Shown piece after piece: positions 1,904-14,127 of a stretch of 64,000 nucleotides of DNA. The notes beneath the pieces are model-generated. The model was not told the DNA's origin, ran no database searches, and worked only from the letters and a program-made list of their open reading frames with translations. Source of the DNA: Hyaloraphidium curvatum SAG 235-1 (Eukaryota; Fungi; Monoblepharomycota); the NCBI GenBank assembly GCA_025558095.1, contig JAIVFI010000005.1, positions 1-64,000 of the forward strand, written 5' to 3'. The position numbers were made by a program, and so were the translations under genes. Every line of letters starts with the position of its first letter. Positions within the stretch are counted from its first letter, which is position 1.

Positions 1904-2751
1904 GGCGAATACGGTGGCGGCGGCGATGCCGGTGTCCCGCCGCCAGGATCAGCTACCGCGGACGGTGCTTTGTCCGACGAGATATCCCAATCGTCGAGCG
2001 CATGTGTCCGCATCCAAACCTCCTGTGACTCGGTCAGGTCGCCCCCCGCCCTGTGCCAGGCCGCAAGCGCCGACCACGCGTCACCGATAGCATCACGGCC
2101 GCCGTCATCGAGGAGCTCGGAACCTGGCCATTCGAGGTGCGCCGGCGAACCGGGCTCCGTGTGAGCATACCAAGGAGGCAAGGTGCGCGTCGGAGTGGAT
2201 ACTTCCGAGGAGCTCTGCCCCCCCCCGGCCGTTGGTGCCGGCGGCGTGCCGGGGGTTGTGCGGGGCGGCGCAGGCGGCAGCTGCAAGCTCGGCACGGCGG
2301 TTGCAGCTGGGGTTTCCCACGGAGGATGGCCTGGGTGCGCCGGGAGCATGGAAGCGGCCGAAGCCGGGGCATCAGCGATCAAGATCGGCGATGACGAGGA
2401 GGGAGATACTTCCGAGCGTGCCGCCCCTTTCCCCCCCGCTGGTGCCGGCAAGCGGGAGGAGCCGCGGGGCGGCGTGGGCAGAGTGTGACCCTCGGCCAAG
2501 CTAGGCACGGCATTTGGCCGAGGGGCCCCGGGGGACGCGGGGTCAATGTCGGAAGTCTCCCCTGCTGCCGCGAACGGCCTCGGAACTCGGTGAGACGTTG
2601 TAGATAGTGGTAGTTGGCGTACCGGTGAAGACTGCAAAACAGCAAAAGATGGAGGGGCTGACCGCGCCCGGGAGGTATCCGGACGAGCTCGGCGCCGAGA
2701 AGAGCAGCCCACTACTCGGCGTTGCCACTTGCTTGGTGGTGTTTTAGGCAT
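1900..2751 (-). CDS. Retrotransposon middle ORF, Pro/Ser-rich, unknown function (283 aa)
   Basis: Fills the gap between ORF1 and the RT ORF exactly. Its ATG overlaps the ORF1 stop (ATGCCTAA) and its TGA overlaps the RT ATG (ATGA). Confidence 0.55.
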   Translation of the reverse strand: MPKTPPSKWQRRVVGCSSRRRARPDTSRARSAPPSFAVLQSSPVRQLPLSTTSHRVPRPFAAAGETSDIDPASPGAPRPNAVPSLAEGHTLPTPPRGSSRLPAPAGGKGAARSEVSPSSSSPILIADAPASAASMLPAHPGHPPWETPAATAVPSLQLPPAPPRTTPGTPPAPTAGGGQSSSEVSTPTRTLPPWYAHTEPGSPAHLEWPGSELLDDGGRDAIGDAWSALAAWHRAGGDLTESQEVWMRTHALDDWDISSDKAPSAVADPGGGTPASPPPPYSP

Positions 2752-4882
2752 TCAAGGACGGTGAGCCAGGAGCCGGCAGCAGGGATCCGGTTGACATGGA
2801 GGCGGCCTTGGCCTGGGGGGAGCCGGGCTTGCGAGCGGCCGCCTTGGCCTTCCGTTCCGCTTTGGCGGATTTGACGTCGATTTGCTGATACGGCTTGGCA
2901 ACCTTGTCCGGGTTTGTCCCTGCCACATCCTCCACGGGACGGCCCTTGCCTGCGTGCTTGGGGCCTGGGGCCATCGTAGGATCACCAACCGCGGATGCCC
3001 CAGCGGCCTCATCGGCCGTGTGCATGTCTTCGCTTGGTGCCTCCGAGTTCGAACCATCGCCCTCAGCAGAGGCTTCGGAGGCAGCGTCGTTTCCACCCGA
3101 GGCCTCAGAGCCGGTGGCATCCTCCTCCATCGCAGATTCCGTGCCCTCCATTGCGGGAGCAGCAAGCTCCAGATCCTCCAGCGCGGTATTGGCTGCAACC
3201 TGCTGTGCAGCACTGCTGATGGCGTTCTCAGCGGCCAGCTGGTCGGCACCACCCATGTCCTCGTCCCCATCCTTGTCAGCCGGCTCCAAAATGGGAAGAC
3301 CATGGAAATCCATCTTTTCGGCGGCGTCAGACTCCCCCCAATCGACCGAAGCACCGGCACTACCACCACCAAGTGCCGAAAACCGGTTGTGGGACGCCTT
3401 GGCCACTGGCTGGGCAAGAGCTGGGGGCGCAGAGCCTGCGCGCTTGCCGGACGGCCCAGCTGTAAGCCACTCGTCGGCCGCAGGGGCGGTGGGGGAAGCC
3501 AGATGCCGAGGAACGACCTCTTCCCTCAGGGGGGGCAGCCGTGGGGTCGTGGCGGGCTCCACCGTTGGGGGAGAGAGCCGTACGTTGGCCGGGTTGTGAA
3601 TGCAGTCCGCCTCGTGTGCACGGCGTGCTTGCGGGCTGGCAAAGGCGCCGGGATTCATGCGGTTGAGACCGTCTGGGCAGTAAGCACAGTTGGTGCACGT
3701 GGCATCGTCACCGACGTGGCCGCCCGTGCGCTTGCAGTGGCCGCACTGTCCGTTGCTACTGTCATAGCGGACAGCTGGGCGAAGGAGCTTGTGCTGGAGG
3801 AGCGTCCCCCACGAGTCAAGGAAGCAGTACGAGGGTGGGCCAATGCGTGCTGCGCGGTCAAAGAAGGCATCAACCCCGCACTGCGAGACGTCGAAAGTGA
3901 CCCGCCAGAAGGCGTTGCTGTCGGTGCCCGAGATGGGAGCCGCTTCAATGACTTGGCAAGGGGCCCCATAGTGGTTCTGGAAAGTCGCGTAGAGGCGGGC
4001 CCACCAGTCCGGGCACTCGTGCACCGAACCAGGGACGATCATGGGCCCGATCTTGAGCTCGGCGTGCGTGTCCTTGAAGACAGGGTGGATGCGCAGCCGA
4101 CGCGTCGGTCCGTTTGGGAACTTGACCTCCAGCACCCCCTGCTCCACCAAGGCGTTGATAGCGTCTGCCCCGTCGACAGCACCAACAACACAGAAGAGGT
4201 CCAGTCGCGAGTAACGCGGGTTGTAGCCTCGCGTCTCGGTCGTGAAGACGGTGGTGGGGAAGGTCGCCTTCGCCACGGCTTCGGCGACGACGCGCCGTCG
4301 GTCCTTTGGCACACCGTTGAGGTCGATGAGGCAGTGGGGGACAGGCCCAATGAAGGCCGGCGTGTAGCCCCGACCGTTGGCGTGCGGTTGCACCCGATCG
4401 ATGAGCTTGGCGTAGTTGGTGGGCGCCGAGAAAGGCATGGCAGAAGCCAGATGCTCCGCCATCGCGCCGTCCGTGACACGAACAATCGGGCGGTCGGGCG
4501 AGGTGCGCGACGTTGCTGCGGCGAAAGAGCGAGACCCCAGGCGCGTGGCGGGGGCGGTTGCTTTCGGGAGACGATTGTGCTGAGCCGGCTCCTCCCGGGC
4601 GCCGCCGTTGGCGGACGCGGGGCGGATTTCAGTGGTCGATTCAGCAGCGTCCTCCTTAGAACCTGTCAGCTGAGCCGTAGCACCAGCGGGGGCCGGCGCG
4701 GGCTCCTCTGCCGCGCCAGGGAGGCGAGGAGAGGCAGCGACGCCGGGAGCGTGGGAAGAGTGGACGGGATTCGCAAGCGCCTCCGAGGAGGCCGCGGCGA
4801 GCGCAGGGGAGACCTTGCCATCAGGCAGGACCACGGGAGCGGCCGCATCATTGGGCCCCTGCCCTGTGTCAGGGGGGTCCAT
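2744..4882 (-). CDS. Retrotransposon ORF1, gag-like nucleic-acid-binding protein (712 aa)
   Basis: Knuckle-like CGHCKRTGGHVGDDATC followed by CAYC...HEADC; low-complexity acidic tail; lies upstream of the RT in the same orientation. Confidence 0.7.
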   Translation of the reverse strand: MDPPDTGQGPNDAAAPVVLPDGKVSPALAAASSEALANPVHSSHAPGVAASPRLPGAAEEPAPAPAGATAQLTGSKEDAAESTTEIRPASANGGAREEPAQHNRLPKATAPATRLGSRSFAAATSRTSPDRPIVRVTDGAMAEHLASAMPFSAPTNYAKLIDRVQPHANGRGYTPAFIGPVPHCLIDLNGVPKDRRRVVAEAVAKATFPTTVFTTETRGYNPRYSRLDLFCVVGAVDGADAINALVEQGVLEVKFPNGPTRRLRIHPVFKDTHAELKIGPMIVPGSVHECPDWWARLYATFQNHYGAPCQVIEAAPISGTDSNAFWRVTFDVSQCGVDAFFDRAARIGPPSYCFLDSWGTLLQHKLLRPAVRYDSSNGQCGHCKRTGGHVGDDATCTNCAYCPDGLNRMNPGAFASPQARRAHEADCIHNPANVRLSPPTVEPATTPRLPPLREEVVPRHLASPTAPAADEWLTAGPSGKRAGSAPPALAQPVAKASHNRFSALGGGSAGASVDWGESDAAEKMDFHGLPILEPADKDGDEDMGGADQLAAENAISSAAQQVAANTALEDLELAAPAMEGTESAMEEDATGSEASGGNDAASEASAEGDGSNSEAPSEDMHTADEAAGASAVGDPTMAPGPKHAGKGRPVEDVAGTNPDKVAKPYQQIDVKSAKAERKAKAAARKPGSPQAKAASMSTGSLLPAPGSPSLNA

Positions 4883-4917
4883 ACTCTCGGGGCGGGGTGT
4901 TCGGGTCAGGGGGGTCC
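4868..4917. repeat. 13-bp direct repeat GTCAGGGGGGTCC (4868-4880, 4905-4917) at the retrotransposon 5' end
   Basis: Exact repeat seen in the sequence. Confidence 0.85.
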
Positions 4918-4932
4918 GGGAGGCATTAGCTA

Positions 4933-5100
4933 CACTCTCAGAAACTGCTACTGTGCCCCCTGTGCCGCAATCCTTTGCGGCCTAGCAGCAATGTTCATCA
5001 TCGAGCCTGCGAATAAAAGGCGGTCCCTGACGGACTCCACCTCGATCAAGCAAATGCAATGGCGCCCACGCGGTGCATGGCACGCCAACTTGTAACTGTT
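4933..5100 (-). ncRNA. Candidate Fanzor omegaRNA scaffold
   Basis: Position at the Fanzor 3' end/element end is typical of TnpB/Fanzor omegaRNAs. Nested stems CTGCTA(4945-50)/TAGCAG(4983-88), GCCGCAA(4964-70)/TTGCGGC(4975-81), and ATCGAG(5000-05)/CTCGAT(5041-46) enclosing GTCC/GGAC. Boundaries are inferred. Confidence 0.5.
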
Positions 5101-8100
5101 TCCGCGGCCAGGTCAGCTTGCCGGCTTGAGCTTCTTGACCGACCCATTCGCGGCGCTTGCGGCCGTACGCTTGCGGCCTGTGGCGGCACCTGGAGCTCCC
5201 GGATCAGCTCGGGATGACGCTCGGGATGACCGTCGCGAATGCGAGCGCGCTCACCCGCGGACTTGCGCGGCGCTGCACCAGTCCCAGCTCGGAGCTTGGG
5301 CTGCGGCTTCGGCTTCCTGGTGTCCGGCCTGAACGGCCAGGGGCGCTCCCCTCCGGTGATGAGGCCGAACCAGAAGAGGTGCTCCATGGAGTGCACACTG
5401 TTCACGTCGCGCATCCAGAAGCGGCGGCAGAGGGGACAGTATTTCACCCCGCGCACCTCGCCCTTGGAGCCGGGGTTCCGGATTCCGACGACATAGGTGG
5501 TCTTGCAGCTGGAAAGGACGTCAGGCGAGTCGGATGATCACGGCGGTTGCCGCACCAGCTGCACATTTGGGACGTGAGGTACTCGTTGACCAAGACCATG
5601 ATCCCGGCCTTGGCCAGCTCCGCCCTGAAGCGAACGATCCGGGAGGCCGGGCCGCCCTTGCTCGCATGGCCGAATCGCGCGGCGCCGTATGCGATGGTCG
5701 TCTGTGGATCGTACTTGCCCGAATACGGGTTGCGACACATGTCGCGACAGATCCAGCTGAGGACCTCGCGGCGCCGGCGAATCGTGCGCACACGATCCAG
5801 GCTGCAGGATGCGTGAGCGAAGTCGTTGCCACAGGGATTGGCTTGCCCACCTCCGTTCTCCGGAACAGTAGACGTCCAGGATGCGGTCGAGTTGTGGCAG
5901 CAGCGCCCTCGTGTAGTCCGAGAAGGCTGCACTGTTCGTTGTGCGTTGAGAGGGCAGGTCGCGCTCGAAATCGTGGAGAGACTTCTGCACAGGGTTGCCC
6001 TCGCAATCGTTGACGTCCAGCATGGTGGTCCGCTTGGTGGCATTCAGACGCGCGGCCGCCTTGTCGTAGCCGCACAGGCGGCGGTCGAGCTTGGCCGGAA
6101 CACCGAGGATGAGCTCCGGCAGCGCCGGGGTCCCCGCACGGCCGGCACCAGCGACCTCGCCCCACAGCTTGGCACCAAACTCGTCCGTGCAGCCGCCAGG
6201 GGTCGGGAACAGTTCGATGTTGCGCCGAGCGTGCTTCTCCGCCTTTGCAGCGTCGTTGGGGCGCGAATCGGGCGCCGGCGGCTTGAACTCCGAGATCTTG
6301 GGCTCCCAGAGCGGGTGGTGTCTGCACGCTCCAGCGGCAGGCGGCGACGGACCGAAAGACCTTGCGATCCGCTTAGTATCGGAGCAGGAGTGCTCTAGGT
6401 GGAAGCCGACGATCCTCCCGAAGCTGACGGAACCGTCGGCCTTGGACGGGTTCGCCCGCTTCGGCACGTAGTGCGACTTGGTGCCGTCGGCATTGGTCAC
6501 GGTGATGCGCTCCGTTGTCCCCGGCAGATGACTGTTGGCGAAGTCGTAGCGTCCGTTCGGCCCGGGGTTCAGGCTCTTGGCAACGAGCCGCACGTCGACG
6601 CGGCGGTTGGCAACAGCCAGAAACCAGCGATTCGGATCCACGTCGACGACCCCGCCCTCCACTGGCTCGCCGCGCTCGGCCCGCTCGAACATTTCCGCCT
6701 GCGTCGGCATGTGCAGGAGATTGGGTGCCAGCACGGACACATGGTCAGGGCGGCTGAGGTAGTAGACGGGAATGCCAGTCTTGAAGTCGACCGGGGGCCG
6801 CGGCAACGGCTCGGCAGAACGCGGCGGGAGCGGAACCGGGGTCGGGGCCAGCTGAGGAGGTACGGGGGCAGCGAACTTGCCCTCGACCGTTACCGTCGGC
6901 GGCGACGGTTCGACCGCGCAAACGACGACTTCGGGAGGGAAGCAAGAAAGGAAGGGGGAAGGAAGTGGCGGCGAGAAGTCGGGGAAAGGAAGGGCCGCGC
7001 ATGGATGCACAGAAGTCTCGGGCACCGAGTCACCGGGCGAGACAGTCGCGCAGGGAGGGTCGTTGTGCCCCGAGCTCAGGGGCGCGAACACGTTGGGCGC
7101 ACAGTCCACGGCCTTGCAGGCGGCATCTTGACAGCACGAGCACGGGTCGTGCACCCAATGCGGGGGCGGTTCCGGGGGAATGGAGGCAGGGAGAGAAGTC
7201 GAGGCTGGTGGTTCGACGAAGGAGTTAAAGGGCGGGGGTTCCGGCGGGACCGCGGCGGGGATGCCGCAGTCCGCCGGAGGCTCGGAAGGCATGGTGGTGA
7301 AGTTAAGGTTGCTGCTGGCACAATAAGAGGGCTCCCAATCCATCGGGACCGATTCGTCCCCTTGGGCCGTCGCCTGCAGGTAGTAGACCATGCCCCCATG
7401 CCAAATCCGATTCTGGCCTGGAAAAGTGAGGATCCGATCAGCCTCCGAACCCGTGCGTCACTGAGCAAAATGCCCACCATCGAAGACAGCCATGTCGCAC
7501 GGCGGGTCCGGATCGCCGTTTGGCAGCCATGGACCGGTGTAGAGCGGCGGGTAGGGATCCATCGGAACATCGCGAGGGAACGAAACATCCACTTCGAAAG
7601 CAGCAAGACCGGCGGGCACATGAGCTGCGGCGGGAACGGAGACGGTGGGCCGAGTTTGAACAGGAGGAGCCGGCGCGGCTGCTGGCGAATGCGCTGCGCG
7701 CTTTGGCGGCTCGACGTCCTGTGTCGTGTTTTGCCGCTCCTGCTGCTGCGACTGCTGGAACGAGACCTTTTCCACGAAGGAGACTTCTTCGTTAAGAATG
7801 CCCAGGGTGCTGCCGCAATGATAGATGCCCCGGACGCCGGAGTACCTCAGAACGTCCGCGGTGCGACGATAGATGGGCTGCGTGGCGGCGGCATGGCCCC
7901 TGGCCGAGACTTTGCCCTGCTGACGGAGGCGGAAGAGCCGGTCCTCGTTGACGAGTTGGTTGCCGCCGTTGAGCAGGTGGCCGAATAGGTAGTCCGAGTC
8001 AACGCGCGAGGTGTCGATGCCAGGCGCGACCTCCACGCCCAGCTTGGACAAAAACTCGGGCAGATCCGAGGCCGAGATGTAGACGGTCACGGGGGACAAG

Positions 8101-11100
8101 CTGATTTCGGCGACCGCAGCCCGAAGCTTCCGCCGCGCCCACGAGGCTGCCTTTTCCTTGCCGGTCTGGGCGGCGCCAAGCCCCGCCATCGCGGCGGCGG
8201 CGGCCGCCTTGCGCTCCCGCCGCTTCGTCTCCATGGTCTCCTTCTTGGCGAGTCCCTCGGGCCCCGGCTGCGGTCGGCGCTTACGGAAGCTCACGACGAA
8301 CCCGTGCCATCGCTTCGGGGAGCCATTCTTGCTGTAATGCCGCTTCTCGACGCGGTGCGGCCGCCACGTGTTGCGGGCCCTCCTGGTCTTGTTCGAAGCC
8401 TCCCTGTCCTTGACCGGAGCAGTTGAAATGGTTGGGAAAGTTGGGGTTGAATCGGGGTCCCTGGCGGTGCTCGTCCTCCGCGCCGTTCCAGGTTCCGGCA
8501 GTGCAGCAGCCGCGGACGCGGCCCTCTTCTTCAGCGCCTCGTCCTGCTTTTCGAGCTCGTGCAGGGCGATGAAGCACATCTGGAAGCCGAAGGCTTCGTC
8601 CGCGGGGTTCGTGGATGAACGACACTTGTCGAGGTCATACTCGCTCATCCGCGCCACCAGAAGCTTCTCGCTTTCCCAGTGGGGCCGGTTCTGCCCCACC
8701 AATGCCGCCGCCGCCGCCTCGTTCATGTCCTCGGCGTGCTCGGGGACCCAGAACTTGGGTTTCTGCTCTGTCGACCGAATCGTTGCCGTGGTCACGGCCG
8801 GGTAGCGGAAGGGGATGCTCCGAAGCTGTAGACGGTTTGCAACCACCCAGTCCCTCAGCTCCTGCAGCTCCACCTTTCGCAAGTCAGCCTTCTCCGCAGG
8901 TGAGGCCCGCGGCAGCGTCTCCCAAATGTTCTGGAGGTAGCTGCGCACCGCCTCCGTTTCCGCGTCGACCTTTCCGCGCGGCTTGCCCTTCGGCAGGTTC
9001 ACGGTTCGCACCGCGGCCGCCACGGGGTTGCCCGCCTGCTTGTCCTGCAGGACCCGAGCGATAACCCTCCGCTGCGAAACGGTTGCCGGCACCGGCGGCT
9101 TCTGTTTTGAATCCCGGAGGTCAACGATCCGGTTCAGCTGCAAGCCTCTGAACGGCCGGAGGAGCCTCCCCAGCCCGACCCTGAGCTCCGTGGCCTCGGC
9201 GAGACCACAGCCAAATGCGCTTTCGAACGGGAAATTGGAGAAGTCGTCGTCCCCATATCCGAGCTTTGCCAGAGCGTAGCTGAGGATTGGGCCAATCCGC
9301 CTCCGGCCGACGCCCGCGTTCACCTCCCCGCGTAGGAAGCGACGGATGAGAACCTTGAGCGCAGTCAGCAGCCGCTGCGGCACGCTTCGAGCTCGGTTGA
9401 AAGCGACCTGCTCGGCATAGCGGAGCAAAGGTCCCTGCACGAAAAGCGGCCTGAGCTTGTCGTACGTCTCGCCCACAAGTTCCCGCGCCTCTGCAAACGC
9501 AGCAACGGCCGCCTTGCGGACAAGCTTTGCCGCTGCGTTGTGCTCCGCGACGGTGAGAACGGACGGTGCGCCCTGATCAGCAACCTGCGAGAGATCGGGG
9601 GTGTCCTCAGCCGTAACCAAGTCCTCGTCCTCAATCTGATCCAGCTCGCCGTGCAAGAAGTCGGCCAAGATCTTGGCGCCGGCCTGGTCCTCGGCCATCG
9701 CGTCGTCATCGTCCTCGAAGTCAACGTCCTCGAGCACCTCGTCTCGATCGTCGTCGTTGGCTCCGAGGTCCGGACCGCCGTCCACAAGCTGCTCCACTCC
9801 TGGCGCCCCCGAATGGCCCGAGTATCTCGCCCCAGCACCGAGCCCGGCCGACTTCTGCTTTCCCGCGCGGCGGGTTCCAACAGCGGCGGACATCTGGCCG
9901 GCACCAAGCACGGCGTGGATGGCAATCTTTGCGACGTAAGACGGGGGAAAGCTGGCGAGCATGTCCTGCGTGACGGATCCGTCTTGGTCCGGGAGCTCTT
10001 TGTTGTGGATCTGCAACAAGATCTTGGTCCAGATGATCTTGAATAAGATGGCGGCGAGGGTGCAGGCCTTGGTGATGAGGGGCCCGACTTGCTCGTACGG
10101 GCCCCGCGCCCATGGGTGGCACACCTCGGCCGCCGGGAACCACTCGACGGCCAGCTCCGTCATCGTCTTGTATCGCTCGTGCTGGGGGTCGCCAAGTGCG
10201 AGGAAGCCGTTGAGCGCGACCCACCGCCGCTTCGGAGAGCACTCCTGCCGGTGCCTCCCGCCACCGGCGAAACAGAAAGGGCAGGACGAGCCGCCGAGGC
10301 CCGTAGGAATGTTGGCTTTGAGGTTTGTCGACGCGAACGGGACAATGTAGTGTGCGTTGGCAATGAACTGGCCGAACGACGTGGTGAGATTCCTTGGGGC
10401 GACCAAACTGTCCGCGGCGGCGGTCAGCTTCGCATCGGTCCCAGGCATGCATGGAAAGCGCGGTGCAACTCACGCCCCACGGTGGTTCTCCTCGACATGC
10501 TGCCGGAACTCACTCTCGAGGTCGAACTGATGTCCCTTCCCCGGGCACGCTCTGCAGGTGAGGTGCGCACCCTTGACGTGGTGGAGGAGCCGAAGCTCGG
10601 CGTCATAGACACGCTCCCGCGCAGCTCCGTCAGCCACCATCCCCGACGCCGCGACCTTGCGCCGCCGCCCAGCCTTCGCCGGGACTTCGCCTTCCACCTG
10701 CACACTGAAGGAACAGAGCGGACAATCCCGCTTCTGGATACGGCCGAAGTCCAGCAGTCCAACGGATTCCGCGAGGAAGTGGAGCTTGGCGTCGAGCGCG
10801 GTGCGCGCGGCCTCCTGCCGTGCTTCGGGGTTGCTACCGCGCACCAGCGCGGGCATACCGCACAAGTCCAGGGTAAAATCGCGCATCTTGGGCCCCGACT
10901 CCAGCAGCCGCAGCGTCACCATGGAAGAGTGTTCCCACCCGAGCTGCTCCGCCTTCAGGAACAGGGTTGCCAGCAGCTTATCGCCCTCTGCATCCAGTCC
11001 AGGTACGCCCGGGCTCATCTGGAAAAGGCCCGGGAACGAAAGCAGCTGCCGGGGCAAAAATCAGTTTGGGATTGCGGGGCTGCTCGACAGGAGATTGCAC

Positions 11101-13418
11101 ACCAGCACGGGAACGGAACCCGGATTCTCGATGGCGAGGGCCTCCTCGTTGGCCGCCATCGGGTTCCACACCGCCCAATCGAAGAATCTCTTGCGCCCTT
11201 CCGCATTGCGACTCGCCACACTATCCGGCAAACGCGCCGCCATGACTATCTTGCATCGCTGCGGGAGGGAGAGCGAAGCAAGGAAGTACTCCAGGCCGGG
11301 CGACGCATCAAAAAGCGAGCGGCCCTGCTGGTCCTTCTGCGTGCGGCACGCTTCCTCCAGTATCTGCCTAAGGTTCCTTGGCAGAGACTCGGTCGAAGCC
11401 GCGCGTTCGAGGTACTCCAACCGACAGACCTTCGAAATGGGCTGGTGAACATAATGCAGAGCACGACGTGCTGTCTCGGATGTTTCGAAGCTGTCCATGC
11501 GTGCCCTCCCGGCCGGGCCGAGCTGTCCCCAGAGAGAAACAGCGAGCGCACGTAGCCATTCTGGTCCACGACCGTTTCGTACAAGGCCCGATAGGAGGAT
11601 GGCGAACCTCTCGTCCAGCACGGTGTCGTTTGCAAGGGCTGAGAGCGGAAACAGCTGTTTCAACGCGGCGCGGCTGGCTTTCTTGAACGAGACGTTAAGT
11701 TCCGGTGGGACGTCGGCATAGCGGGCGAGGTTATCCAGCTGGGAGATGGAGACGTCGGGGGCTGACGGCGGTCCCAGATCCGCGCCATCGTCCGCGGGGC
11801 GGAAAAAGGGAGGTGCCGGTGCGTCTGGTCCGATCAGACTGGGGGCGACCCGGCGCCGCCGGGCGACGATGTTCCGGAGGCGCGCGACGAAAAGCTCGCG
11901 CTCCAGCTTGTACCCCCGACCCGATGCCACCCGCTGACAGATGAACTCAAAAGGAGCTTCACCGAGGTTGGAGAGGCCCCCGAGGACGTCCGCAGCGTCG
12001 AAGCCCGCGGTCCTTTGAGCGGAGTCCGTGAAGTCGTTCCACGGCCCAAAGAATTCCCTCGCCGAACCATCGACGTGGAGAACTTCCCTCAGGGTCAGCA
12101 AAGTGTGCTTTTGGTGCGGGTTGATGTGGGCGACGCCGAGGTTGCGAGCCTGCTCGGAGTGGGCGTTGTCGTGAGTCAGCGCGGTCTGCATGCCCGATGC
12201 GCAACCGTCATGGCAGTCCACCTCTTCAGCGAGCCGCTCGGCCGCGTTTGCTTCGGTCTGGGTCGCTGCTGCGCCCTCCATCGCGGAAGGGCACGTCTGA
12301 GGAGCCGGAGAAGCAAAGGCAGAGATCTGACCTTGTAGTGTGACCTTCCGCGCCACACATTTGCCGGCGGACGCGGATTCCGCGATGCGCACAAACTCAG
12401 CCTCGCTTAGCTTCAAGCAGTGCCGGAACGTCGCCATCAGATCGCCGTGGCCGACGATTTGAATGGCCCTCTCGATGGACCGGACGAGATCCGGCACCGT
12501 CCTGGGGCAGTCCCGCCTCACGAGGTTCTTGATCGTGGCAAACACGTACTCGGTCGGGTTAAATTCCGGCGATCTCGGTCGCAGGTAGATGAGGCTCAGA
12601 TTGTTGGCCTTTGCTACGGCCTGGACCGCAAGGAACGACTTGCCCGAGAGGTTCTTTATTATTGCCGTGCCGTCCGTGGTCTTCCTTGCCCGCAGAGGAG
12701 AGCCGTGGAAACCCGCATTGTCCAGGATAACGCCCAGGGACTCGGACCCACAAGCCCCGGCGCGAATAGTCTTGAGAAAAGCACAGAACCTCTCGGTGTT
12801 CATGTTGCCGCTGTAGATCTGGTACGAGATCACGTTTCCAGTGTGATTACCGGGTCGCGGAGTGGGTGAGATGGCGAGGCAAAGGGTCACCTTGGGGCCC
12901 CGGTTCCCTGGCAGGTATACGACGGCGGGAGTCCCCTTCTCCGAGTAGCCGAAGCGCCCCGGATCGTTGAGTTGGAATGAGGACTCGTCCAAGGCACCTA
13001 GGCGCCCCAAATCAAAGGAAGTGACCCTCTCGTGGAACATGCGGTGCCGCTCGGGTTGTTTCAGGGCTTCGGCGCTCTTAATGGTGAGCTTCTTCCTCGT
13101 GACCCTGTTGGCCTTCAGCAGCCGCGAGATATGCTGCTGCGACACCAAAACGCCAAACTTTTCCGCCAGGTCAGCAGCGAGCTCCCTTTGCGTCACGCGG
13201 ACGCGAGCTTTGGCCTCGTCAACTACGTGCCGGACCATTTCCTCGGACACCTTGCGGAAGGCCTTGCGGGGATGGTCCGGAACGGTCTGAGCCCCACATC
13301 GGCGGATCCAACGGAAATACGTCGTTCGGTGAATTGCGAGTACAGCAGCAATCTCGTCCGGGCCAAGCTTGCCGGTCTGCTTGAGCCGAACCGCGGTTTC
13401 TGGCCCGCTCAGAAGCAT
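5046..13418 (-). CDS. Predicted spliced IS630/Tc1 transposase-Fanzor fusion, ~2697 aa; exons 13418-11103, 11045-10474, 10407-7478, 7417-5851, 5801-5556, 5508-5046
   Basis: N-terminal HTH (EIAAVLAIHRTTYFRW) and DDE motifs LDESSF / ILDNAGFH / SPEFNPTE. C2H2-like fingers. RuvC-I VVDVDPN, IAYGAARF, RuvC-II VLVNEYLTSQMC, Zn ribbon CSCC...CPLC, RuvC-III FWMRDVNS, then RPWPFRP. Five GT..branch..CAG introns (57, 66, 60, 49, 47 nt) join all fragments in frame. Confidence 0.8.
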
Positions 13419-14127
13419 GTTTTGGCCGTGCCGTTCCCCGATGCGACGCAGGAGGCACCACGCGCCTTTTGCGATGGAGACTGTGCTCTAGCGGTTGCAA
13501 ATTCGCACGCGGCGACTCCGGCAAGCTCGAGTAGCGGGACCTGTGTGTGAAACGAATTCGATCGCCCGGCCTTGTGGTGATTCAGCCCCTCCCCAGCGGG
13601 CTGCGCAGGGCCGTTCTCGCAGCTGGCGAAACCGCGATCCCGCTGTATGCCGAGAATGCGAATGCGCCTTGACTAGTCGCTGTGAGAGGGAGGCGCGGCC
13701 GGTGCGGAAATCGCCAAGGGCAGGCCCGGGCGGCGGAACGCGCTGGGCCTTGGGCCCACACCAAGAACAGTTTCTATGGCGCGGCGAATGCAAATGGATC
13801 GATTCTAAAAGCCATCGTAGGCGCGCCCGAAAGGTCCAGGCACGCCTCAATGGTGGTAGCGTGGGGCGGAAAGCGATCGCCCCAACGCCTCCACACGCCC
13901 CCCCCGCCATCACGGTTGCAGTCGGGGAAGGGCGTCACTCGGATCATTTTCGAGGGCACTGCGTTTCGCGGGCAGAGGGCGGCTCGGTGGCGGGACGGTG
14001 CGGGATCGGCGTTGATCGGGAAGGGGGAGGGGACGGTTGACGCGGTCGGCGCGGGGTCTCGAATGTTCGCGATTGCGGGCTGATGTACGCGGTTCAAATA
14101 TGAGTCCCGAGGTCCCGTCGGGTTGCA

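Follow-up and report, generated by a model that had tools for sequence, protein, structure and literature searches.

A candidate transposase-Fanzor reading frame in a transposon of the fungus Hyaloraphidium curvatum

Can a cut-and-paste transposase and an RNA-guided nuclease be parts of one polypeptide, and what would such a fusion do? Published Fanzor transposons keep the two apart: Mariner/IS630 elements with Fanzor or TnpB encode separate proteins and carry TA duplications (PMC3627910, PMC10691335, PMC10530073, PMC10711439), and a 2026 review asks why DDE transposons retain an obligate mobile element-guided activity (OMEGA) nuclease, and how the target-adjacent motif (TAM) coexists with variable duplications (PMC13565253). 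The question is raised by a transposon, here called family A, whose single gene fills its 8,629 bp in the genome of the freshwater fungus Hyaloraphidium curvatum SAG 235-1 (assembly GCA_025558095.1). The host is confirmed by an H. curvatum protein in NCBI (KAI9033139.1), to which one locus of the genome corresponds with 100% identity. The copy described lies in positions 1 to 64,000 of contig JAIVFI010000005.1, the stretch of 64,000 nucleotides analysed here (the window). Family A offers a testable answer: one predicted protein, with a distal motif taking over from the adjacent TAM.

One frame from transposase to nuclease

The original prediction had joined six minus-strand fragments through five introns, and its coordinates proved exact: removal of the introns, each with GT, a branch point and CAG, leaves 8,094 nt with a terminal stop only, encoding 2,697 amino acids (Table 1). 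The catalytic codons also lie where they had been placed, those of the transposase at D 12989, D 12722 and E 12551 and those of RuvC at the positions listed in the table.

Table 1. Features of the family A transposon in the window (all on the minus strand; L043 and L044 are relatives from other samples).
Feature	Position	Strand	Description
Whole transposon, family A	4927..13555	-	8,629 bp; 10 copies, ~99.8% identical
Left target duplication	13556..13557	-	2 bp, AT in the window copy
Left terminal inverted repeat	13530..13555	-	26 bp, imperfect; starts T(C/A)GTTTCACAC; inner box GCTACT
Exon 1	11103..13418	-	aa 1-772: HTH, DDE domain (D144, D233, E290), then 420-aa extension of unassigned fold, conserved in family B
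Intron 1	11046..11102	-	57 nt, phase 0; position common to families B, C and L044
Exon 2	10474..11045	-	helical part and two C2H2-like zinc fingers (~10724-10482); candidate motif reader
Intron 2	10408..10473	-	66 nt, phase 2; position kept in B, C, L044
Exon 3	7478..10407	-	976 aa without known domain; purifying selection against family B
Intron 3	7418..7477	-	60 nt, phase 1; kept in B
Exon 4	5851..7417	-	proline-rich linker, RuvC-I (D at 6638, motif DPN), helical part
Intron 4	5802..5850	-	49 nt, phase 2; kept in B, C, L044; missing from L043
Exon 5	5556..5801	-	RuvC-II, E at 5584, seven residues ahead of first zinc-ribbon Cys; 84% identical to family B
Intron 5	5509..5555	-	47 nt, phase 2, within first CxxC; kept in B; missing from C, L043, L044
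Exon 6	5046..5508	-	zinc ribbon, RuvC-III (D at 5408), basic tail, stop
Candidate omegaRNA	4912..5050	-	hairpin 5043-5017, then right end and ~15 nt of flank as putative guide; presumed extent
Internal match to family A target motif	4967..4978	-	in right-end hairpin, 50 nt from right end; no equivalent in B
Right terminal inverted repeat	4927..4952	-	ends in GTGTAGCTA
Right target duplication	4925..4926	-	2 bp, AT in the window copy
Best upstream-motif match, window copy	13582..13593	-	weak; displaced outward by 4 nt relative to 8 of the other 9 copies

Domain and homologue searches were run exon by exon. A profile search of exon 1 returned DDE_3 (E = 5.5e-15) together with helix-turn-helix (HTH) matches, the N-terminal HTH and catalytic domain expected of IS630/Tc1/mariner transposases, and this HTH-DDE part covers amino acids 1-345. 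The DD34E-type spacing typical of that group, of which variants exist, is not seen: 56 residues separate D233 from E290. At the other end of the protein, the split RuvC D-E-D and the TNB zinc ribbon of Fanzors are present, with the glutamate in the rearranged, Fanzor-type position about six residues ahead of the zinc finger (PMC13565253). None of the families has lost any of the three RuvC acidic residues. PF07282 was not detected in the window exons searched separately; in the intron-free relatives L043, L044 and L055 it scored above the cut-off. The Cys and His residues of the exon 2 zinc fingers are invariant in four lineages, and the ~1,200 aa that come after the zinc-finger exon have no known relatives: searches for homologues of the linker and exon 3 found none. 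Metagenome and viral scans came back empty.

The original prediction had suggested asking whether the frame stays open in other copies and relatives. It does so in seven of the ten family A copies, one further copy carrying only an in-frame deletion, and in four of the five copies of a sister family, B, with the linker under purifying selection. Family B (8.66 kb, 2,630-aa frame) is collinear with A across the six exons, and away from the catalytic cores the two share 33-45% amino acid identity. Family B has all five introns of A, unchanged in position and phase, and two more that A lacks; the lengths of the shared introns are 59, 54, 52, 60 and 58 nt against 57, 66, 60, 49 and 47 nt in A. Between the two families, pN (non-synonymous difference) is 0.12-0.5 against a saturated pS (synonymous difference) of 0.6-0.7 in every segment, and non-synonymous difference stays below synonymous in every 100-codon block, in both cases with the linker included. 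The RuvC-II and RuvC-III exons are the most conserved (84% and 67%).

A third family, C, was found in ENA metagenomes as a 10.4-kb element with the same DDE at one end, RuvC at the other and the same TAG...TAGCCA ends. Its 3,159-aa frame, read through five canonical introns, is open in 15 of 17 complete contigs, which are not independent and hold collapsed copies, and its polymorphic indels fall within introns. Introns 1, 2 and 4 of A and B recur at the same positions and phases in C and in L044. Intron 5 is missing from both L043 and L044, which come from other samples, and L043 is also without intron 4; their sequence reads straight across the predicted joints. Homology of A and B with C is interrupted between the DDE domain and exon 2, where the 420-aa extension common to A and B is replaced in C, and the family C DDE is joined onward through a further frame-restoring intron. 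Shared introns, open frames in A, B and C, and selection together point to a one-frame DDE-to-RuvC architecture that is old and maintained. A decayed pseudogene with chance GT-AG pairs was rejected, since introns are conserved across families and open copies exist.

The original prediction had gone further and proposed a single polypeptide. Its part concerning one DDE-to-Fanzor reading frame is strongly supported by three families, two organisms and the purifying selection seen in the linker; a fused polypeptide as the main product we infer more cautiously, in view of two features around intron 1. When the intron is retained, the frame meets a stop at the branch-point TGA, which would give a 785-aa transposase. 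In A, B, C and L044, unspliced intron 1 reaches such a stop after 13-18 codons, and the peptides read from it resemble one another (46% identical between A and B, the level of the neighbouring exon). In addition, a Met stands 19 codons ahead of the intron 1 donor in A and B, and 22 in C. Isoforms of two kinds, the 785-aa transposase and a Fanzor initiated at Met754, are real possibilities. They might even be the two main products, with a transposase whose extension reads the target motif described below, a Fanzor of ~1,940 aa initiated at the Met754 codon at 11159, and the fusion as a minor isoform; the break in homology between A/B and C at this place would suit such an arrangement. However, the intron 1 stop lies within the branch-point motif and only 13 codons into the intron, so its conservation may be incidental and needs no coding role. 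Moreover, any transposase transcript that splices intron 1, a canonical intron, would encode the fusion, just 15-19 nt separate stop and acceptor, and the family C DDE is carried onward by its further frame-restoring intron. We regard two main products as rather unlikely. A separate start at MEGAAATQ, which the original prediction had named as its alternative, was rejected because it is not conserved in family B.

Ends of the element and placement of its insertions

The 26-bp imperfect terminal inverted repeats have the length typical for IS630/Tc1/mariner (~20-30 bp). In family A, the left terminal dinucleotide (TC or TA) tracks the internal single-nucleotide polymorphism haplotype and the right one is invariant, so that both belong to the element; a TA duplication was rejected for this reason. 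The target duplication consists of 2 bp of variable sequence and was seen in nine of ten family A and three of five family B copies. The TA target-site duplication (TSD), strict in IS630 and Mariner (PMC13565253), is thus absent from both families.

Copies of A and B are inserted in one orientation downstream of a family-specific 10-bp motif, at ~21 bp in A and ~17 bp in B. The family A motif, AAGGGRYTK, ends 21 nt before the duplication, and its T is invariant in all ten copies. That of family B, GCGYCGATCA, ends 17 nt before it and is exact in three copies, the other two being shortened at their junctions and also without duplication. Thus the motifs of the two families differ, as do their proteins. 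A best-window test gave approximate p values of 2e-4 (A) and 6e-4 (B), and leave-one-out scoring ranked the true motif position first or second among 291 in eight of ten A copies; the mirrored right-flank position, scored for the motif, gave nothing. The motif persists without L029 and in both haplotypes, and an artefact of related flanks was rejected accordingly. Beside the left end (-3 to -20), no conserved bases were found, which means that the ordinary adjacent TAM of Fanzors, including a 5' TSD, is missing.

The observed frame, active sites, ends, 2-bp duplication and motif placement make the element a candidate for targeted insertion, to which we add by inference a reader domain, an RNA and cleavage. 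The explanation that we favour, with a probability of roughly 0.55 for the whole, is that the element belongs to a new IS630-like family, has recently been active as a cut-and-paste transposon and encodes a fused protein that reads the distal motif, integrates downstream and recuts the donor by means of an omegaRNA. One pre-mRNA would be spliced to encode a 2,697-aa protein made up of an HTH-DDE transposase, a linker, zinc fingers and an enlarged Fanzor. Either the zinc-finger exon or the TAM-reading lobe of the Fanzor would bind the distal motif through protein contacts, and the bound motif would position the DDE domain for integration about two helical turns downstream in one orientation. 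An omegaRNA from the right end would take the right flank as guide, and, by analogy with known Fanzors, RuvC would recut the empty donor site and the element would be copied back from the sister chromatid. The distal motif probably replaces the missing adjacent TAM, and the fusion would let one reader serve both target choice and the licensing of cleavage. That it is the Fanzor half, by its TAM-reading lobe or its RNA, which picks an integration site ~20 bp away for the fused transposase is a narrower claim, and a doubtful one.

In structure searches, the exon 2 zinc fingers matched folds that were all zinc-finger DNA complexes, and the model of the RuvC-I region (predicted local distance difference test score of 59) ranked SpuFz first. 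Of six indels in family A, four begin 16-21 nt inward of the left end, equal to the cut distance of SpuFz1 (PMC10432273); they could mark a SpuFz1-like cut, but also incomplete gap repair. Several observations weigh against the favoured explanation. Two of the ten A copies, including that in the window, have no motif at the standard distance. A distal motif sought in family C was not significant (p 0.2-0.4; collapsed metagenome contigs). Left-end indels of family B begin at +34 or later, not at +16-21. Finally, the structural matches are weak, with E = 0.85 for SpuFz and E above 1 for each zinc-finger complex.

Candidate RNA and guide matches

The hairpin that follows the stop codon is kept in family B with a different loop. 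The candidate omegaRNA had no match in an Rfam search and folds no better than its shuffles (z of -0.4 and -1.4). This folding, the lack of an adjacent TAM and a Fanzor half three times the size of solved Fanzors (~600 aa) would agree with a nuclease that no longer cuts for homing and merely binds DNA or regulates, the motif being a preference of the transposase. In contrast, the RuvC-II and RuvC-III exons are the best conserved of all and the three acidic residues are present in every family, and so we find this reading very improbable.

The original prediction had suggested RNA-guided transposition. The flank test lends it no support: right-flank guides matched no left flank beyond chance (<=4-5 nt), and flank-guided insertion was rejected. 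The one candidate for complementarity between guide and target, as in CRISPR-associated transposons (CAST), is a 12-nt internal match, in family A only, which is the best motif match in the whole element and scores above all 110,578 background positions. Since it lies in the right-end hairpin inside the candidate omegaRNA, the Fanzor half might base-pair with the target through an element-encoded RNA while the DDE domain inserts at a fixed distance. The fixed distance and single orientation, which families A and B share with CAST, fit this, and several target deviations are A-to-G changes tolerable under G:U pairing. However, besides the failure of the flank guides, family B has no copy of its own motif, and the A consensus and the internal site differ at two positions. 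CAST effectors are nuclease-dead and work with TnsC/TniQ, whereas here the RuvC triad is intact and such domains were not found. CAST-like integration is therefore improbable in our judgement, and protein contacts with the distal motif remain the preferred explanation.

Relation to known systems and further relatives

Mariner/IS630 elements with Fanzor1 (PGv-1, PUl-1; Bao and Jurka 2013, PMC3627910) likewise hold a DDE transposase and a Fanzor in one element with inverted repeats, and the IS630-linked elements of the DDE-6 branch a DDE transposase and a TnpB gene (PMC10691335). In those elements the proteins are separate and the duplications are TA, whereas the element described here has one spliced frame, a variable 2-bp duplication, TA/CA as element ends and a distal motif. 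Fanzor1 proteins such as SpuFz1 (PMC10432273, PMC13565253) share the RuvC D-E-D, the glutamate just before the zinc ribbon, a conserved non-coding right end and introns; in contrast to the ~600 aa of such proteins, the part from exon 2 on has ~1,900 aa and extra zinc fingers, while a conserved adjacent TAM and a fixed TSD are both missing. Insertion in one orientation, at a set distance from a recognised site, is known from Tn7-like TnsD, CAST (Cas12k) and engineered TniQ-TldR fusions (10.1101/2025.08.27.672191). Here, it goes with a predicted single polypeptide, an IS630-type transposase, no TnsC/TniQ, a RuvC with its active site and a eukaryotic host, and guide dependence is putative at most. 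In its workings the element resembles a DDE transposon that bears an OMEGA nuclease, and in the placement of its insertions Tn7, but it departs from the TA trait of IS630/mariner, the adjacent TAM and size of Fanzors and the dead effector of CAST; if the Fanzor half steers integration, it would come close to a new class.

We found no natural transposase-Fanzor fusion in the open literature, nor any mention of this host there. Dead Fanzor2 and TnpB failed in fusions engineered for targeted integration (10.1101/2025.08.27.672191), and family A, as a candidate for targeted insertion in nature, is the nearest natural eukaryotic counterpart to such fusions. If the Fanzor half chooses the site, insertion could be redirected by altering the Fanzor module or its RNA, and since this harmless fungus, which is in culture, holds two young families whose motifs differ, the targeting module can be mapped directly by domain swaps.

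Further observations concern the relatives. About half of the family C left flanks (L045, L048, L051, L055, L064 and L065 junctions) end in TACWG immediately before the element; three of these flanks lie within copies of a single repeat, and several family C left junctions have small insertions or lost terminal bases. In the family C linker at L055:3383-5449, a tryptophan-rich helical unit that bears no relation to the A/B linker apparently occurs twice in tandem. In L044, an insertion at 3132-3860 (+ strand, in the frame of a 1,209-aa open reading frame) has a DGDC motif that by eye resembles an OTU-type protease domain, with no Pfam match. Two more divergent DDE-to-RuvC elements lie at G000:C2:397656-406415 and C2:426757-435543, the former with an open frame of 2,066 codons in the stretch that separates DDE from the RuvC region, and apparently without intron 4. 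Related DDE genes with open frames of up to 913 codons, near which no RuvC match was found, occur at G000:C5:421650, C23:314189, C13:321470, C27:349503 and C15:359140, and are possibly Fanzor-less relatives.

A young non-LTR (long terminal repeat) retrotransposon with ~20 copies (L011-L020) occupies 2744-4899 (minus strand) of the window and begins a few bases beyond the right end of the family A element, and its insertion displaced most of the presumed guide of this copy. A YCTGAGA-like motif stands 15-30 nt upstream of most retrotransposon copies; for the copy in the window, that motif is part of the right end of the transposon (4941-4936). A composite of the two elements was rejected because the retrotransposon shows a target preference of its own. 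Another family A copy (L022, G000:C15:545136) is inserted in a different but related transposase gene, at the 5' end.

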